Sequence record: PP456877.1
DNA: 64,000 nt
Direction: 5' to 3' (one strand)
In this document: positions 27,504 through 34,615 of the stretch, one piece after another
How the letters are laid out: every line of letters starts with the position of its first letter
Numbering within the stretch: the first letter of the stretch is position 1
Notes under the pieces: generated by a model
Told to the model about the DNA's origin: nothing
The model's input: the letters and a program-made list of their open reading frames with translations, nothing else
The model's database searches: none
Translations under genes and position numbers: made by a program

Positions 27504-27588
27504 GCCCGAATGGTGAAATTGGTAAACACAGAAGACTTAAAATCTTCCGGCTACGGTCTTGTCGGTTCGAATCCGACTTCGGGCACCA
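27504..27588 (+). tRNA. tRNA-Leu(TAA)
   Basis: Cloverleaf with long variable arm; GAAGA-CTTAAAA-TCTTC; encoded CCA. Confidence 0.96.
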
Positions 27589-27597
27589 ATTTAAATA

Positions 27598-27673
27598 CGG
27601 AGTGTAGCGCAGTTGGTAGCGCGCCTGCTTTGGGAGCAGGATGTCGGGAGTTCGAGTCTCCCCACTCCGACCA
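27598..27673 (+). tRNA. tRNA-Pro(TGG)
   Basis: CCTGC-TTTGGGA-GCAGG anticodon arm; CCA. Confidence 0.96.
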
Positions 27674-27694
27674 TTTTAATAATAGGTAAATAGG

Positions 27695-27988
27695 ATGGAT
27701 AATAAATGGATATCATGGGAACATCAAATTATAGGAACAGCTCTTTACGCTATTCTTAGTGACCCTGAATTAACTAATATTCAATTAGCTCAAGGCTTAC
27801 ACTATCTAACAGAAGCAAAGTCTTCTGTATTACATGTTTGTAATAACCATATTACATTCACTGTAACCTATCCACATGGCACATTTAGAACCAATGTAAT
27901 TAGAGAGTGCCCTGCTAGTGATACAAATACATTCAAATGGTCAGGTGTATTAGTCCGTCAAAAAGATGGAACATTCTTACCAGAATAA
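27695..27988 (+). CDS. Hypothetical protein
   Basis: ORF track; lies between tRNAs. Confidence 0.7.
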   Translation: MDNKWISWEHQIIGTALYAILSDPELTNIQLAQGLHYLTEAKSSVLHVCNNHITFTVTYPHGTFRTNVIRECPASDTNTFKWSGVLVRQKDGTFLPE

Positions 27989-27995
27989 ATAAAAA

Positions 27996-28072
27996 GGGCC
28001 TATAGCTCAGTTGGTTAGAGCAGGCGACTCATAATCGCTTGGTCGCAGGTTCAAGTCCTGCTGGGCCCACCA
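27996..28072 (+). tRNA. tRNA with CAT anticodon, Ile2-type (lysidine) rather than Met
   Basis: GCAGGCGACTCATAATCGCTTGGTCGC core closely resembles enterobacterial tRNA-Ile2; CCA. Confidence 0.85.
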
Positions 28073-28088
28073 TATACTAGCCTCCCAC

Positions 28089-28346
28089 TTGGGGGAGGTT
28101 TTATACTGTCTCATTGAGGAAAACATGAATACAGTAATAATGTTGGTATTATCTATCAAAGTTGGATTATTTGGTTTCATTTCGACTAATGAAAGTAATA
28201 TCCTATTTGAAAATAGGGAACAGTGTATTTCTCATCTGGATATTCTGGAACATAAATACAAGTCTCTTGAAGTTATTCGAAATGAGAATACTCTAAAGAT
28301 AACCGAAAGAGATAACCATTCTATTTATATTTTTAAATGTCTCTAG
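28089..28346 (+). CDS. Small exported/membrane protein (start likely MNTVIML)
   Basis: GAGGA RBS before internal ATG; hydrophobic N-terminus. Confidence 0.65.
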   Translation: MGEVLYCLIEENMNTVIMLVLSIKVGLFGFISTNESNILFENREQCISHLDILEHKYKSLEVIRNENTLKITERDNHSIYIFKCL

Positions 28347-28642
28347 GAAAATACATGGAACATCAAGAACAAAAAGAACTATTGAGACAACCATTACAAA
28401 CACTTTATAATCTTACTTTTAGTCCCCGTTTACGTAATGGAGCGAAGGCTCCCGATTGGATTCACCTGACCGATGAAGTAACCCTATTCCCAAACGGATT
28501 AGATATTACAATCAACGCTGTTACACGTTGCATCAAATGGGAACTTATCGGCGAGGATGTAAGTAACATTACTTATGTTGAAGCTATGTTCTTTAATAAA
28601 GGTCTTAAAGCAGTTAAAGCCTATCTCAAACATACGGAGTAA
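28337..28642 (+). CDS. Hypothetical protein
   Basis: ORF track. Confidence 0.7.
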   Translation: MSLGKYMEHQEQKELLRQPLQTLYNLTFSPRLRNGAKAPDWIHLTDEVTLFPNGLDITINAVTRCIKWELIGEDVSNITYVEAMFFNKGLKAVKAYLKHTE

Positions 28643-28644
28643 AT

Positions 28645-28992
28645 ATGGATCATCTAACCCCAACGCAGAGCGCTGTATATTTCACATTTATTAGCCCTGA
28701 GTTTATAAAGCTAACTCTTGTTGAATCTTTTGTAGCGATCCACAAGAAACATCCAGAAGTAAAGCATTGCGTTAAGAAAAAGATTAGTGCTAATGAAACG
28801 CAGTTTATCTTTATCTTCAAAGATGGGACTGATAATTTAATCATTACACGTAAAACTGAACCTTGCCCTGAACTGGATAGCCCAGTAGGCGATAGTATTA
28901 AGTTGTCCGGCGAAGAACTTAAAAATATTCTTGCTAAGTACGATCGTCCCAAGGATGGTAACTATTTCAAGCACTGGACTGATCGCCCGTAA
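28645..28992 (+). CDS. Hypothetical protein
   Basis: ORF track; GGAG RBS. Confidence 0.75.
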   Translation: MDHLTPTQSAVYFTFISPEFIKLTLVESFVAIHKKHPEVKHCVKKKISANETQFIFIFKDGTDNLIITRKTEPCPELDSPVGDSIKLSGEELKNILAKYDRPKDGNYFKHWTDRP

Positions 28993-29044
28993 TAAAATAT
29001 TACTGGTTATGTAATACTATGTAGGAAGTCATGTCCATACGTTT

Positions 29045-29121
29045 GCGCTCATAGTTCAGTTGGTTAGAATACCCGCCTGTCACGCGGGTGGTCAGGGGTT
29101 CGAGTCCCCTTGGGCGCGCCA
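29045..29121 (+). tRNA. tRNA-Asp(GTC)
   Basis: CCCGC-CTGTCAC-GCGGG; CCA. Confidence 0.96.
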
Positions 29122-29127
29122 TTTAAT

Positions 29128-29203
<76 letters not shown>

Positions 29204-29287
29204 TATTCTAAAGAGTAGCTTCGGCTACTCTTTTATGTTGCCATGGGTTATCTTATGAATTAAAATGATTTACTTGAGAGCACACTC

Positions 29288-30301
29288 ATGTTTGAATTAC
29301 TATTAGCAACTAGTGGTAAAATAAAGCCAGTTGAATTAGTACAATATATCGGTTATGAAAAAATAGCTGACCTGGATATTCCGTTACATGGTTCTATCCC
29401 TTATATTTGGAACGATAAACTATTCGTTAAGGGTGGCGGTACAGATGTTAGTTCTAGTGATCCAGGATTACGCAGGTTTAAATTAGATGGTACGTTTGAG
29501 AATAATAAGAATTTAAGCAACTACATCTATCATACGAATCCAGCGCAAGACTCACGAACTGGTAGAGTTTATTTAATCAACGGTAGGTCTAATGGTAGCT
29601 GGAGTTCTAGCGTGGTCCATGCCATAGATGCTTCTGCGGAGACTATAACTAATCTTGGTTGGAGCACTCCTCGTGGGAACTATGGTAACTCCACGGTATT
29701 TGACGAAGATAACAACAGAATTTACGTCCAATTCCACGATAGTAATCAGTTCGGTTATTACACAACCGATGGCGTCTATCATAACAGCCCGAAAGGCTTT
29801 CCTGCTGCTAGTCTAAGTGGTGCTTTTATATTCAAACATAAAGGCTACATTTACGTGATGGGTGGATGGGGATCCAGTGTTGCATCAAATCCGGATCACC
29901 TGGCGAAATTCGATGCTGGGACAGCAATGACGACAATCATGAGAATGTCGATTTATACACAATTGTGGGAAGTGTACGATATATTACCTACCGAATACCA
30001 TGGTGGTAACCAGGGCGCCGGTAACTACCATGAAGGTATCTTCAGCTATATTAGCTGGAGTGGTAGTAAACTCGGTGCGGTTCGCTATGATGTGTCTGGT
30101 AAAAGATTTATTCGTTTTGATACGGGTATTAGCTATCGCAACGCGACCGGTGTGGTTGGTAATAAAGGAGAGCTGTATCTGGTTGGTGGATGTTCAATTC
30201 CGTTGGGCTCGACTAACCCACCGTTCGGTAGAAAGGCAGAAACGAAGACAGAAATATACAAGTTCATCCTTCCTGCTCCACTACCACCAAGTGATAAGTA
30301 G
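29288..30301 (+). CDS. Kelch-repeat beta-propeller protein 1
   Basis: LFVKGG, YIYVMGGW, LYLVGG repeats; MFELLL N-terminus. Confidence 0.8.
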   Translation: MFELLLATSGKIKPVELVQYIGYEKIADLDIPLHGSIPYIWNDKLFVKGGGTDVSSSDPGLRRFKLDGTFENNKNLSNYIYHTNPAQDSRTGRVYLINGRSNGSWSSSVVHAIDASAETITNLGWSTPRGNYGNSTVFDEDNNRIYVQFHDSNQFGYYTTDGVYHNSPKGFPAASLSGAFIFKHKGYIYVMGGWGSSVASNPDHLAKFDAGTAMTTIMRMSIYTQLWEVYDILPTEYHGGNQGAGNYHEGIFSYISWSGSKLGAVRYDVSGKRFIRFDTGISYRNATGVVGNKGELYLVGGCSIPLGSTNPPFGRKAETKTEIYKFILPAPLPPSDK

Positions 30302-30453
30302 GTGTTACGTACACCAATGCTAGAACCTCACAGAGGGGCAGGGTACCTTAGTATTGGTAACAGTCTTTACACCTTATAAAGGCAGCCATTTGGCTGCCTT
30401 TATGCCGTTACCGTTTATCTTATGACTTAACTGTATTACTTGAGAATATACTC

Positions 30454-31461
30454 ATGTTTGAATTACTATTATCGCCAGATATAGGCGAAGAGTTACCCTT
30501 GGTTGGATTTAATGAAATTATTAAATTAGGTGATCTACCTGTAGCGTTAGCTGGTACAATGTCATATGTGGATGGAAATACACTGTATGTTGGATCTGGT
30601 CATCATACTGAAGGACAAACAGCTGCAACTGTGTTCAGACGTTTTACCATATCGCCATTTGCCGATATAGGTGCAACTGCTTCTGGAACATTCTTACCAG
30701 GGGTATCTTTAGGATTTGGGACATTACATAAGAATAACTTTATTGTTTATGGCGGTATTACTGGATGGAACTCGGCTGGTAATGGTGGTACGGGAACATC
30801 TAACTTTATACAACATTTTGATATAGCTACAGGCAATAGGGTTGAGCGATATAGTGGTCCCGTACCACTTTGGGGCACAGCCTCCGCATCAGATGGTAAT
30901 GATCTTATTATGTGTGTTAACCCAGTTGGGGTAAATGCAATGCGGTTAAAACCATCGGGTAAGACATGGCTTAGTGGGCAAGATTATTCAGGTGGTGCTC
31001 GTTCAGGTCAACAGTTATTCTTTTATAATGGTTACTTTTACCATTTTGGTGGTTGGGATAATACAAAGAACATACCTAATCTTGAAGTTTATCGATATAA
31101 TGCAACTACCTTAATATGGGAGCAAACACCTTGGATGATTATACCTGCTGATAAAGGAACAATCTGGCAAGGTAATGGTTATGTAGATGGGGACTATTTT
31201 AATTACCTTAACGCTGTTGATGTCGGCGGTGTAACTAAAATGTTTGCACAACGTTTTAATATTAGGCGCCGGAAATGGGCTGAACCATTTGAACTAGGTA
31301 TCGGATTCCTTAATATTTCATCTATAGCTAAAGGTCCGGATAATAGCATGATCATTGTAGGTGGATCTAAAATGCCAGTTGGTGGTGGAGCATATATGTT
31401 GAAAAGCCAATTGTTATCAGGTATCTATCAGGTAAAACTAGCGCCATTAATCATTGATTAA
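30454..31461 (+). CDS. Kelch-repeat beta-propeller protein 2
   Basis: FIVYGG, FYHFGGW, MIIVGG repeats; MFELLL N-terminus. Confidence 0.8.
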   Translation: MFELLLSPDIGEELPLVGFNEIIKLGDLPVALAGTMSYVDGNTLYVGSGHHTEGQTAATVFRRFTISPFADIGATASGTFLPGVSLGFGTLHKNNFIVYGGITGWNSAGNGGTGTSNFIQHFDIATGNRVERYSGPVPLWGTASASDGNDLIMCVNPVGVNAMRLKPSGKTWLSGQDYSGGARSGQQLFFYNGYFYHFGGWDNTKNIPNLEVYRYNATTLIWEQTPWMIIPADKGTIWQGNGYVDGDYFNYLNAVDVGGVTKMFAQRFNIRRRKWAEPFELGIGFLNISSIAKGPDNSMIIVGGSKMPVGGGAYMLKSQLLSGIYQVKLAPLIID

Positions 31462-31513
31462 AATAATAATATTTATAACTATTTAGATAATTATACTGGC
31501 ACGATGATATTAT

Positions 31514-31625
31514 GTAAGAGTACTATAATAAAGTATTCTTAAATCTATCCACTAAACACACTCGGTGGTAGAACTTATTATAGAGTGTGTCTAAATGCCA
31601 GGGGTTTGCCACCCCTGGTTATATT
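31514..31625 (+). ncRNA. Candidate compact structured RNA (kissing loop plus pseudoknot)
   Basis: TATGTA start; complementary loops ATAATAA / TTATTAT; terminal CCAGGGG/CCCCTGG hairpin. Confidence 0.55.
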
Positions 31626-31745
31626 CATTGTTACTATTATAAATTCATTTATAGATGAGAAAAGGTTTTATCACCTTTTCAAAATCGGCATTTAATTCCA
31701 GTTAAAAAACTGAATCTATGCTACATTGTAATAAAGGAGTCTATT

Positions 31746-32258
31746 ATGACTAACTCTAATCCGTTTGTAAGAACTATTGTAAAGTACCAAGATATCCTAG
31801 ATGCTTTAATTCAAAAAACGAATGAGAACTGGGTTAATTATCGATCTAATTCTATTGGTCATATTGTTATTCGTGAATACAGGACTGTTGGATTATTTGT
31901 AGGTCGGCAATGTGGTAGTACAACTGCATTGATTGAGTTTGCTAATCGTCACCCTGGCGAATGTCTAGCTGTATTTGTAGAAGATAAAATTAAACAGGCT
32001 GTACTGGCTAAGTTCCAGAATGCTAAAGATAATATTGTTTCTTGTTTAATTACACACCAACTCCGCAAATATATTCATCAACCTGAAGAATCATCTATTC
32101 AAAAAGATATTAAAGAAGAATTAATATCGTCTGTAAAATATATTCTTGTTGACAATGCCTCATTTAATCTGAACCTACGCGGTATCACTGATAAAGAATT
32201 TAACCAGTGGGTTGCAGATACTTTTGGTACAGAGGTAATGGTGGTTCGTTTTAGTTAG
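31746..32258 (+). CDS. Hypothetical protein with degenerate P-loop-like motif
   Basis: LFVGRQCGSTT ... ILVDN. Confidence 0.65.
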   Translation: MTNSNPFVRTIVKYQDILDALIQKTNENWVNYRSNSIGHIVIREYRTVGLFVGRQCGSTTALIEFANRHPGECLAVFVEDKIKQAVLAKFQNAKDNIVSCLITHQLRKYIHQPEESSIQKDIKEELISSVKYILVDNASFNLNLRGITDKEFNQWVADTFGTEVMVVRFS

Positions 32259-32419
32259 AATTAGTAACTTTGATAGTTTCTAATAAGATTAACTACACGT
32301 TATTTACATAATGTCATAACAAGAAATAAATAATACTCAGATTGTAATAATATGTAGTTATTACATATCTATATTAGGTTGTCAGTAACTCATCTCTAAT
32401 ATAAAATCGCCATAATTCT

Positions 32420-32495
<76 letters not shown>

Positions 32496-32626
32496 ATTCA
32501 TAGTTTTAGATTTAGTTATATTTCACTACTATGTAAACTATAAAGGCAGCATTAGCTGCCTTTATGTCGTCTTGTAAAAGTACCCAGTAGTTGAATCTTA
32601 TAGCTGAATACAAATAGGGTAAAGAC

Positions 32627-32812
32627 ATGTCACTTAAAGCATTGCAAGATATAGTTAGTAGTGTTCCTACAAATGAACAAAAGGAACGATTAGTTAAAGT
32701 TCGGAAAACGATGGAAGAGCTAAATGAGTCTATTAAGAATCAGATTCGTAATAAACGACCTAGTCAAGCTCTTCTCGACAAAACGATAAACTGGGGTACC
32801 AAGTATGGCTAA
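32627..32812 (+). CDS. Small coiled-coil protein
   Basis: ORF track. Confidence 0.65.
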   Translation: MSLKALQDIVSSVPTNEQKERLVKVRKTMEELNESIKNQIRNKRPSQALLDKTINWGTKYG

Positions 32813-33095
32813 GACATTAGTTCGTGCAAAGCTGATTACCGAAGCTGGTCAATGGATGTCGTCTGACTGGGAATGTGGTTTCCGTGCATGTCGATTCGTG
32901 AAACTTGGTAATGATCATGTAAACATAAAAGACTTTGAGGCTATGATCACGGCATTCGAAGTTGGTGACATGTTAGTGATTTGGCCAAATGGGCTTAGAA
33001 CTTCGTATAGTGTGGATAATTTCAATAAGTACTTTTCCCATATCAAAGATGAATACCATGAGACTGATCTCCGTCCACTCTTTTACCCCAAGTAG
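32805..33095 (+). CDS. Hypothetical protein
   Basis: ORF track; overlaps upstream stop. Confidence 0.7.
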   Translation: MAKTLVRAKLITEAGQWMSSDWECGFRACRFVKLGNDHVNIKDFEAMITAFEVGDMLVIWPNGLRTSYSVDNFNKYFSHIKDEYHETDLRPLFYPK

Positions 33096-33566
33096 TTGAG
33101 CTTATGATAACTATATTCGTGTATAAATACATTACATTCGTTATACCCTTTAATTGATTGAAATCAAGCTACATAAAAGTGATTGAATGGTCCATGTAGG
33201 TGATAATTTTAATAAAGGTAAAGGATTTATCAGAGAATATCTCAGTGCATTTAGGTATTTTATCACTCGCCTATCTAAATCACATAAAGCCCTTTACCGA
33301 GGAATGTGAGAATGTTGGTTGCGATTGATAATACTGGGACATAATATGATGTCGACCCAACTGATGAAGTAGACGTAATGTTTGTATTTAGACCCACACT
33401 AAAATAACTTTATATGACTTAATACCCCTCTATATAGAGTGGTCTATTTATAAGTAAAATTATACATAGAGTTAATATTATTTGTAGATTAGTTCTACAC
33501 ATAACTCAACTTGAAACCGGGTGTTAATAAAATTTAACACTACGGAAAACATAAAGGTGTATAAAA

Positions 33567-34196
33567 ATGGCTTTTCATTTTACTGAAGTAGATTTAAATG
33601 ATTTTATCAATGAATCAGGTAAAGACTTAAAAATAAATGTTGGTAAACAAACACTAGCAGTTTATGATATCGATAGGCTAAATATTGTTAATTCAACTAT
33701 TAATAAACTAGTTTATAATGAACCTATAAGTGAAGAACACATAGATGCATCACTTACAGATAATTCATTAAAAGAGCTTAATGATTATTTACTAAATGTT
33801 GGTGTTACTGAAAGCGCTAAAATGATGATTGATGCTGTGTTAGAATTAAGCGATTATCATAAAAGTGATGAATACTTTAACCCAATGATGTATAAATTAA
33901 AAAGTATGCACACTAAAAATACAGATGGTGTTTATTTGATATTTTTACCAACGCCTACTATCGATGATCAAATTAACACCATGCAAGGGTATATTATCAA
34001 TAAATCCGGTAATCTCATTAGGACTACTGTACAGTCATGGCGATTTGAGAAAATTGAATTCAAAGACTTAGCCAAACATGATAGACGTTGGTTATTTATT
34101 GAATATTACATTAATGTTAAACAAACGAAAAATAATATAATCAAAGAGCAACAAGATGAATTAACTAAATTTATTTATTATAGTACTCTAAGTTAA
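33567..34196 (+). CDS. Hypothetical protein
   Basis: ORF track. Confidence 0.7.
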   Translation: MAFHFTEVDLNDFINESGKDLKINVGKQTLAVYDIDRLNIVNSTINKLVYNEPISEEHIDASLTDNSLKELNDYLLNVGVTESAKMMIDAVLELSDYHKSDEYFNPMMYKLKSMHTKNTDGVYLIFLPTPTIDDQINTMQGYIINKSGNLIRTTVQSWRFEKIEFKDLAKHDRRWLFIEYYINVKQTKNNIIKEQQDELTKFIYYSTLS

Positions 34197-34252
34197 AACA
34201 AATAAAAAATAAATATAAGAGCTAGCCCCTAATGGGCTAGCTTTATGTTATC

Positions 34253-34390
34253 TTACTCTGCTACATCTTTTACATCAGGTTTATTATTCCAACGTACTGC
34301 TCTCGCAATACCATACGTAAGAATAAGAGCACCCACGGTGCCAATAGTGGTGCTAATAATAATGCCAAGAGTTTTTGGATCAATATTCAT
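34253..34390 (-). CDS. Small single-TM early protein missing from track (45 aa)
   Basis: MNIDPKTLGIIISTTIGTVGALILTYGIAR...; AGGA RBS; own early promoter; hairpin downstream. Confidence 0.65.
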   Translation of the reverse strand: MNIDPKTLGIIISTTIGTVGALILTYGIARAVRWNNKPDVKDVAE

Positions 34391-34437
34391 ATTTAGTATC
34401 CTATTTACAATTAATAGAAAATATTACTTTTAGTAAT

Positions 34438-34476
34438 ATCACATTTGTAATATACCTTTTAAATAGGTTTGAATAT
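34438..34476 (-). promoter_or_regulatory. Early promoter
   Basis: TATTCAAACCTATTTAAAAGGTATATTACAAATGTG. Confidence 0.85.
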
Positions 34477-34538
34477 AACTTTATTTATTATAATAAATTA
34501 AAATAATACTTTCATATACACTATATGTAGAAGATTAC

Positions 34539-34615
34539 GCCGCTATAGCTCAGCTAGGTAGAGCAACGCACTTGTAATGCGTAGGTCCTCCGTTCGATTC
34601 GGAGTGGCGGCACCA
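34539..34615 (+). tRNA. tRNA-Thr(TGT)
   Basis: ACGCA-CTTGTAA-TGCGT; CCA. Confidence 0.96.

Follow-up and report, generated by a model that had tools for sequence, protein, structure and literature searches.

A published small RNA of phiKZ-like Pseudomonas phages with a conserved core that probably forms a pseudoknot

The locus between genes 298 and 297

The sequence analysed here is a 64 kb (64,000 nucleotides, nt) stretch of record PP456877.1, hereafter the window, which belongs to a phiKZ-type Pseudomonas aeruginosa jumbo phage. Our subject is a structured RNA encoded on its + strand, in the 284-nt gap between gene 298 and gene 297. This gap lies in the transfer RNA (tRNA) and accessory-gene region of the phage, where 7 tRNA genes are distributed over positions 27504-34615. 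A 601-base stretch around the RNA is 100% identical to Pseudomonas phage phiKZ (AF399011, 270210-270810, minus strand), and within this stretch phage vB_Pae3705-KEN49 has the same coordinates as the window. At the RNA locus, phiKZ positions are obtained as 302110 - x, where x is the window position. An initial annotation, based on the letters of the sequence, had proposed at 31514-31625 a compact RNA in which the loop of a second hairpin (B) pairs both with the linker separating it from a first hairpin (A), as a pseudoknot, and with the loop of hairpin A, as a kissing loop. All the sequence elements that it listed were recovered in place, and the features retained after our analysis are collected in Table 1.

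Table 1. Features of the 298/297 locus, in window coordinates
Feature	Position	Strand	Description and basis
Gene 298	30454-31461	+	Virion/tail-associated Kelch/NanM-like protein; open reading frame (ORF) list, annotation, PHROG 19623
Promoter P138	31485-31514	+	phiKZ 'middle promoter', ends TATTATG; Putzeys et al. Table S3, transcription start site (TSS) 270595(-), exact upstream sequence
Non-coding RNA 3'UTR_PHIKZ298 / 5'UTR_PHIKZ297 / TU214	31515-31625	+	111 nt; published ends mapped to the window
Hairpin A	31515-31541	+	10-base-pair (bp) stem and 7-nt loop, starts at first transcribed base; minimum free energy (MFE) fold
Linker strand UCUAUCCACU	31544-31553	+	5' strand of possible H-type pseudoknot; complementary to 31564-31572
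Hairpin B	31556-31590	+	8-bp stem and 19-nt loop; MFE fold
Loop B 5' half GGUGGUAGA	31564-31572	+	3' strand of possible pseudoknot; invariant
Loop B 3' half UUAUUAU	31575-31581	+	Complementary to loop A (31525-31531) in phiKZ and SL2 only
Terminator T126	31597-31625	+	9-bp G+C-rich hairpin 31597-31619, then UAUAUU; terminator scan, fold, transcription termination site (TTS) 270485
Rest of gene-297 5' untranslated region (UTR)	31626-31745	+	Covered by read-through TU212/TU213; transcription unit (TU) table
Gene 297	31746-32258	+	170 amino acids, first gene after leader; ORF list; PHROG 2586 (category: function unknown)

The RNA is a known phiKZ transcript

The RNA is the already published phiKZ small RNA 3'UTR_PHIKZ298 / 5'UTR_PHIKZ297; it is not new, having been reported in 2021 and re-annotated in 2023. 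In a Grad-seq study, Gerovac et al. (2021; 10.1101/2020.12.06.403469) described an abundant RNA of ~100 nt in the PHIKZ298/PHIKZ297 intergenic space, which was found in the light, low-molecular-weight gradient fractions 3-4, apart from ribosomes, was confirmed by northern blot and was drawn as two stem-loops, the second being the likely terminator of gene 298. Using ONT-cappable-seq, Putzeys et al. (2023; 10.1101/2023.10.13.562163) re-annotated it to 270595-270485 on the minus strand of phiKZ (TSS 270595, TTS 270485), gave it its own start site and termed it 5'UTR-derived from PHIKZ297. Northern blots of the RNA with two probes are on record in the literature (10.1101/2020.12.06.403469; 10.1101/2023.10.13.562163). 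According to the transcription map of Putzeys et al. (10.1101/2023.10.13.562163), TU214 is a geneless unit of 110 nt starting at promoter P138, and the read-through units TU212 and TU213 depart from the same promoter and span gene 297, a tRNA and genes 296-294.

By the coordinate conversion given above, the published ends therefore correspond to 31515-31625 of the window. The expectation that the locus encodes a discrete, compact and structured non-coding RNA on the + strand is thus borne out: the ends initially proposed lie within one base of the published TSS and TTS, the single-base difference being at the 5' end. The two molecules are the same in sequence, strand, ends and RNAfold energy. 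The RNA sequence in Table S7 of Putzeys et al. begins taagagtactataataaag, the RNAfold energy in the published tables (-40.30) equals the MFE of -40.3 kcal/mol that we computed for the nested fold in the window, and a published ORF screen requiring a Shine-Dalgarno sequence classed the RNA as non-coding. The passages of the two papers that deal with the RNA present nested stem-loops alone; the pseudoknot, the loop-loop complementarity and the comparison with the clade of phage KTN4 are absent from those passages. A literature search for later functional papers on this RNA retrieved none that assigns it a function.

The signals that delimit the transcript are readily recognised. TATG occupies 31511-31514, just before the first transcribed base (31515); the P138 sequence of Putzeys et al. 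(10.1101/2023.10.13.562163) ends ...GATGATATTATGT, and the neighbouring middle promoters P137, P140 and P141 likewise end TATG or TATGT in the published list. The -30 to +1 region of P138 is conserved, and its class assignment is that of Putzeys et al. and not the product of a motif score. At the other end, T126 displays the layout of an intrinsic terminator, with a G+C-rich stem-loop (9 bp including 6 G-C pairs, 5-nt loop, -16.5 kcal/mol), a U-rich tail (TATATTCATT) and a 3' end mapped just after it (31625, 6 nt past the stem), with the caveat that the U tract is interrupted and that the predictor used by the authors does not attach the label 'intrinsic' to it in the published table. Among the six distinct homologues compared below, T126 varies solely at its basal pair, where phiKZ has G-U and the five others have G-C.

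Three hairpins in a very stable nested fold

The nested fold of the RNA (MFE -40.3 kcal/mol) is far more stable than expected from its composition (z = -5.8 against dinucleotide shuffles), with 0 of 200 shuffles being as stable. Hairpin A is built from stem strands 31515-31524 and 31532-31541, which form 10 pairs including one G-U and enclose the loop AUAAUAA (31525-31531). A linker of 14 nt (31542-31555) leads to hairpin B, whose stem strands (31556-31563 and 31583-31590) enclose a loop at 31564-31582. Evaluated separately, hairpin A contributes -9.1 kcal/mol and stem B -10.6 kcal/mol, the latter reaching -14.7 kcal/mol when a weak, G-U-rich extension within the loop is included; the helix between linker and loop B, folded as a hairpin, amounts to -8.0 kcal/mol.

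All three hairpins predicted initially hold up in the relatives, hairpin A through compensatory changes, stem B through G-U-compatible changes and T126 by being fully paired throughout. Hairpin A, stem B and the terminator all include G-U pairs, and these are consistent with the + strand only.

The promoter and the RNA form a conserved module in a divergent block

Copies of the RNA are confined to phiKZ-like phages of P. aeruginosa (genus Phikzvirus), and most records are near-identical to the window. The structural comparison covers six distinct sequences, which fall into two clades, the second of which includes KTN4, fnug, T2P, U1B, OMKO1, FBPa36 and others. When the region was used as a blastn query against the KTN4 clade, the alignment comprised 31485-31625 alone, that is, the promoter and the RNA, at 84-85% identity. 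Segment by segment, identity between the window and this clade is 91-97% in gene 298, whereas the 23 nt following the gene 298 stop codon cannot be aligned; it is 79-83% in P138 and 85% in the RNA (95 of 112 positions), against 56-61% in the remaining gene-297 5' UTR and 68-70% at the nucleotide level in gene 297, the product of which is 63% identical in amino acids to its KTN4 homologue. The higher identity of the promoter-RNA segments relative to the flanking UTR and gene 297 argues that this module is more strongly constrained than its surroundings. To the published account, our comparison thus adds that promoter and RNA constitute a conserved module (~85%) within a far more divergent block, that the 5' hairpin is conserved in shape only, that a pseudoknot-capable core exists which is not in the published fold, and that the kissing loop is unconserved.

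Constraint is distributed very unevenly along the RNA. Hairpin A is hypervariable, with ~10 of 28 positions differing between the clades, yet 8 of its 10 pairs are kept in every sequence. Two of the pairs have changed on both sides, namely A-U to G-C, for which T2P has the intermediate G-U, and G-U to U-A. Judged from these alignments, hairpin A is conserved in shape and free in sequence. Stem B is 100% paired in all homologues, and its sole changes are C to U substitutions giving U-G pairs; since the same changes would produce mismatches on the opposite strand, they point to an RNA made from the + strand. The linker, hairpin B and the terminator are near-unchanged, and in the conserved core ~7 of 84 positions differ compared to roughly 40% in the flanks. 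This pattern of substitution indicates that the RNA core is under purifying selection.

Other phages of the wider group lack the RNA. In PA1C the promoter is kept, similarity ends ~15 nt into the RNA and resumes only at the last codons of gene 297; from this break and restart it follows that a single deletion took the RNA together with most of gene 297. The match to the query also stops early in phiHQ and LBG22, and in BRkr and phiHQ the tRNA-Asn gene lies close behind gene 298, an apparently similar layout to that of PA1C. A tblastn search with gp298 reaches PA1C, BRkr, phiHQ, LBG22 and PhiPA3; with a covariance model of the six distinct sequences, no RNA was found in the corresponding loci of PA1C, BRkr, phiHQ and PhiPA3, and no second copy or paralogue within the window. 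Among larger collections, IMG/VR yielded one copy (PA7), a pattern scan of metagenomes gave 19 matches, all unrelated and at chance level, and a scan of GTDB genomes returned no copy of the RNA.

A candidate pseudoknot between the linker and loop B

The linker segment UCUA-U-CCACU and the 5' half of loop B, GGUGGUAGA, can form 9 pairs around a single bulged nucleotide, at -10.3 kcal/mol by RNAduplex. In loop shuffles that preserve composition, each of the two complementarities proposed for loop B (with the linker and with loop A) was reached in ~0.5-0.8% of trials on the window sequence, and both jointly in 0 of 5000; for the linker/loop-B pairing the shuffle p is about 0.007. The observation made in the window sequence is therefore real and exceeds simple chance, with the caveats that it was a post hoc pick out of 64 kb and that only part of it is backed by homologues.

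That part is the linker/loop-B helix. Its energy is unusual in all six distinct sequences (per-sequence shuffle p 0.004-0.034, the six values being non-independent as the sequences are related), and 8 of its 9 pairs are invariant across them. The linker has only two substitutions, a U to C change of the bulged base (T2P) and a U to G change that turns the terminal pair from U-A into G/A (KTN4 clade). Beside the helix, two loop-B positions vary, both of which are unpaired in the model. None of the linker/loop-B pairs has changed on both sides; since nothing co-varies, the homologue comparison is compatible with a pseudoknot and falls short of proof.

In simulated co-transcriptional folding, the linker/loop-B helix pairs first and is the MFE structure of transcripts that have grown to 59-69 nt, at which stage the 3' strand of stem B has yet to be made; stem B can then be added without displacing this helix. 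The result would be an H-type pseudoknot whose connectors measure 2, 0 and 10 nt, for which a rough Dirks-Pierce-style sum yields ~-18.5 kcal/mol compared to -14.7 for the nested alternative, the tight 2-nt connector being ignored in this estimate. The pseudoknot of the initial annotation thus fares well as regards its invariant core, its unusual complementarity in all homologues and its energetic competitiveness, and is left short of confirmation by the lack of covariation. Considering these models together, an H-type pseudoknot, stacked on stem B, is the probable structure of the conserved core (linker CUA-CCACU plus loop B GGUGGUAG).

The kissing-loop complementarity is restricted to one lineage

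The second complementarity of loop B behaves very differently. In the window, loop A (AUAAUAA) and UUAUUAU of loop B can form 7 of 7 pairs (loop-shuffle p ~0.005); the 9-pair version put forward initially draws in two bases that stems A and B already use. We considered whether a common genomic word could explain this complementarity and rejected the idea, as TTATTATA occurs 16 times in the genome against ~13 expected. In Churi, fMGyn, PA7-Y12 and HUST_1, the central A of loop A is replaced by C, which produces a C/U mismatch at that point, loop B being unchanged. Further away, 4 of 7 pairs are kept in KTN4, 5 of 7 in OMKO1 and 6 of 7, including two wobbles, in T2P. The loop-loop energy is accordingly unusual in phiKZ and SL2 (shuffle p 0.007) and unremarkable in the others (Churi 0.10, OMKO1 0.20, KTN4 0.26, T2P 0.74). 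With an uncompensated mismatch in Churi and fMGyn and this level of decay in KTN4, T2P and OMKO1, the kissing loop does not stand as a conserved feature: from the aligned homologues, the 'kiss' between loops A and B is probably a lineage-specific coincidence lying outside the conserved design.

What the RNA may do

The overall picture that we favour, and hold to be fairly probable, is that of a stable, prematurely terminated leader RNA with a conserved functional core consisting of the linker and hairpin B. The first steps are taken from the literature, which shows that the phage non-virion RNA polymerase initiates at P138, between the gene 298 stop codon and the gene 298 terminator, with two reported outcomes. 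In one, transcription stops 111 nt on, at T126, and yields the abundant short RNA; in the other, it reads through into gene 297, tRNA-Asn and genes 296-294. Stem-loops at the 5' end are known to stabilise RNA against RNase E-dependent decay. Hairpin A, which starts at the very first base, and the terminator hairpin may likewise shield the two ends from attack by RNase E-type enzymes and 3'-exonucleases, respectively, and the abundance of the RNA would then result from this double protection. The linker and hairpin B would be the functional part, in the form of the pseudoknot, and may either tune read-through of T126 into the accessory operon or dock a partner.

Several observations weigh against this picture, or against the place of the pseudoknot in it. 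PA1C-like phages live without the RNA and its neighbourhood is reported to be non-essential, so that any role is accessory. Six distinct sequences in two clades are all that exist for comparison. Both strands of the pseudoknot are invariant and therefore do not covary, and separate binding sites would give equal invariance. A 2-nt connector spanning an 8-bp stem is sterically tight. GGUGG of loop B has two alternative partners, namely the weak G-U-rich helix within the loop that RNAalifold predicts and CCACC in the terminator. Finally, one loop A/loop B pair has changed on both sides (A-U to U-A), which leaves a weak loop-loop contact conceivable.

The principal competitor of the leader RNA differs from it mainly in what the core does. 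Here the molecule would be a trans-acting regulatory RNA or a protein-binding decoy, in which the invariant linker and loop B bind a host or phage RNA or protein rather than each other. We regard this as a serious though rather unlikely alternative. An abundant RNA that has its own promoter, is found in fractions 3-4 away from ribosomes and has a strongly conserved core is what one might expect of such a regulator, but it has no known partner, its conserved motifs are not repeated above chance in the rest of the window, and the mutual complementarity of linker and loop B exceeds chance, which independent binding sites would not require. A potential target was nevertheless noticed: 31517-31532, the first 16 nt after the RNA 5' end (AGAGUACUAUAAUAAA), are perfectly antisense to 34174-34189 (+), the last codons of ORF 33567-34196, which encodes the phiKZ-294 homologue and lies on the same read-through transcript, hence in the same operon. 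The match is statistically odd, near and exact matches being less frequent than in shuffles. It is, however, poorly kept in relatives (13/16 in fMGyn, 10/16 in KTN4) and shows no compensating change; as it does not co-vary in either phage, we rejected 34174-34189 as a trans target.

At the opposite extreme, the RNA could be a functionless by-product, arising because a promoter happens to lie upstream of the gene-298 terminator, with conservation reflecting promoter and terminator only. The promoter is indeed inside a 3' UTR, the terminator is needed for gene 298 anyway, phages of the PA1C, BRkr and phiHQ type live without the RNA, and similar short terminated RNAs are common among phiKZ 5' UTRs, the published list holding 17 non-coding RNA candidates. 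Nevertheless, the best conserved part is the 54 nt made up of the linker and hairpin B, which lie between hairpin A and the terminator and belong to neither of these two signals, and the pairing of hairpin A is kept through compensatory changes. This explanation is accordingly improbable.

Of about the same low probability is a stronger version of the leader model, in which the core pseudoknot would be a sensor and a bound small molecule or protein would set the choice between stopping at T126 and reading through, as in a riboswitch-like attenuator. If this is true, the polymerase so controlled would be the unusual non-virion enzyme of phiKZ, within the phage nucleus.

Very unlikely is the tertiary fold originally envisaged, a kissing complex combined with a pseudoknot and acting as a new self-cleaving ribozyme or a nuclease-resistant knot. 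Both complementarities do exist and are jointly rare in shuffles of one sequence, and one kissing pair has changed on both sides; the kissing helix, however, is broken at its centre in Churi and fMGyn without compensation, is at chance level in the KTN4/T2P/OMKO1 clade and involves loop A, which sits in the fastest-evolving part of the RNA. From model considerations, the 3' half of loop B would also have to cross the pseudoknot groove while forming a 7-bp helix with loop A, a geometry that appears strained. The statement that the topology is unlike known ribozymes is correct, and the absence of a matching class would mean that a ribozyme here had to be a new one: with cmsearch against Rfam 15, tRNAs alone pass the gathering thresholds in the whole window, and over 31440-31760 the top match is rliF (22.8 bits against a threshold of 60), with no ribozyme or riboswitch model at E values up to 10. 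Membership of a known ribozyme or riboswitch family was rejected on these grounds, at gathering and permissive thresholds alike. As for a new ribozyme, there is no sign of one: the abundant species is the full-length RNA of ~100-110 nt, which has a primary 5' end and stops at the terminator. Going by the abundance of this intact RNA and its primary 5' end in the published data, self-cleavage is probably absent.

That a small protein is made from the 36-codon GTG ORF at 31585-31695 (+), annotated as a hypothetical protein in one record (PP456877), is hardly credible, given that the frame reaches a stop after 16 codons in KTN4 and T2P, that it crosses the terminator hairpin, which together with the truncation makes it probably a spurious gene call, and that the RNA was classed as non-coding in the published screen.

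Two further ideas were dropped along the way. A tRNA-derived origin had been suggested by the D-arm-like CUCGGUGGUAGA seen by eye and by the tRNA neighbourhood, and ARAGORN and Rfam RF00005 detected no tRNA at 31514-31625 (RF00005 without a match at E up to 10). A repeated regulatory motif was likewise abandoned, the recurrence of CTCGGTGGTAGA and CTATCCACTAAA in the window being not above chance.

Comparison with known systems

The nearest parallels to the leader RNA favoured here come from phiKZ itself. Other leader RNAs of this phage, such as the 71-nt RNA ahead of PHIKZ221 and the 141-nt RNA ahead of PHIKZ302, and those of other Pseudomonas phages are reported to have the same origin in premature termination, and share the arrangement of a promoter followed by a nearby terminator, giving either a short abundant RNA or a read-through mRNA. 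Unlike in origin, no relationship to them in sequence or structure was found, and the covariance model detected no second copy in the window.

Small H-type pseudoknots located ahead of terminators are characteristic of the preQ1-I/II, SAM-II and fluoride riboswitches. The likeness of the window RNA to these is one of layout only: a leader that either terminates or is read through has, ahead of its intrinsic terminator, a loop that can pair with the single strand next to it. It differs in having no Rfam match, ligand, evident antiterminator or covariation, and in that here it is the 5' flank that pairs with the loop. Phage T4 offers a parallel of another kind, as its tRNA cluster includes the stable RNAs rnaC and rnaD ('species 1 and 2'), which are processed from a tRNA precursor. 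Like them, the RNA described here is an abundant and stable phage RNA of unknown function residing among tRNA genes; there is no sequence relationship, however, and the window RNA, a primary transcript, has a promoter and a terminator of its own. Kissing complexes between loops, for their part, are exemplified by ColE1 RNA I/RNA II, the HIV-1 DIS and L2-L3 of purine riboswitches. A 7-nt hairpin loop fully complementary to another loop, as in the sequence of phiKZ and SL2, resembles these, but the complementarity is lost in the relatives, so that the defining conserved pairing is missing.

The core defined here offers mutagenesis a specific target, and the phage has become amenable to engineering.

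Neighbouring genes and the downstream leader

Gene 298, the 3' UTR of which includes the small RNA and uses the same terminator, encodes a product with weak matches to the Kelch and NANM families of Pfam. A 2025 transposon study reports it to be conditionally essential, as a host-specific adsorption factor for some wild P. aeruginosa strains, and the genes surrounding it to be non-essential. The ORF directly upstream (29288-30301, +) is a distant paralogue of gene 298, with 24% identity over the full length, and also belongs to PHROG 19623. Genes 298 and 297 are flanked by two tRNA-Asn(GTT) genes (29128-29203 and 32420-32495, both +), which are 3.2 kb apart and obtain the same Rfam score (70.3 bits).

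Within 31900-34100, the offset to the phiKZ reference shifts from 302110 at the RNA locus to 301336 near the phiKZ-294 homologue, from which it follows that the window phage is ~774 bp shorter than phiKZ between gene 297 and this homologue. Churi, T2P, OMKO1 and FBPa36 differ in the genes that they carry there, which suggests that the region 3' of gene 297 is a mosaic accessory region. In PA1C, a remnant peptide of gene 297 (...GITDKEFNQWV...VRFS) is still readable (positions 2523-2929 of the PA1C locus). A published non-intrinsic 3' end, T124, falls at ~34194 in the window, 5 nt past the 16-nt antisense site described above, and is followed by an A-rich tract; this 3' end may reflect internal oligo-dT mispriming on that tract.

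The stretch of the gene-297 5' UTR located 3' of T126 contains two further hairpins, at 31659-31680 and 31687-31722 (+). Both are present in KTN4, T2P and OMKO1 with other sequences (for example, GAAAAGGU/ACCUUUUC versus GAAAAUGG/UCAUUUUC), in a UTR where identity is just 56-61%. The motif ACATTGTAATAAAGGA (31725-31745, +), conserved right before the start codon of gene 297 in every clade, is similar to the end of the middle promoter P137 (...CAGATTGTAATAATATG), the driver of the tRNA-Asn unit, and is also seen in PA1C upstream of tRNA-Asn; ACATTGTAATAAAGGA may be a second promoter-like element overlapping the ribosome-binding site.

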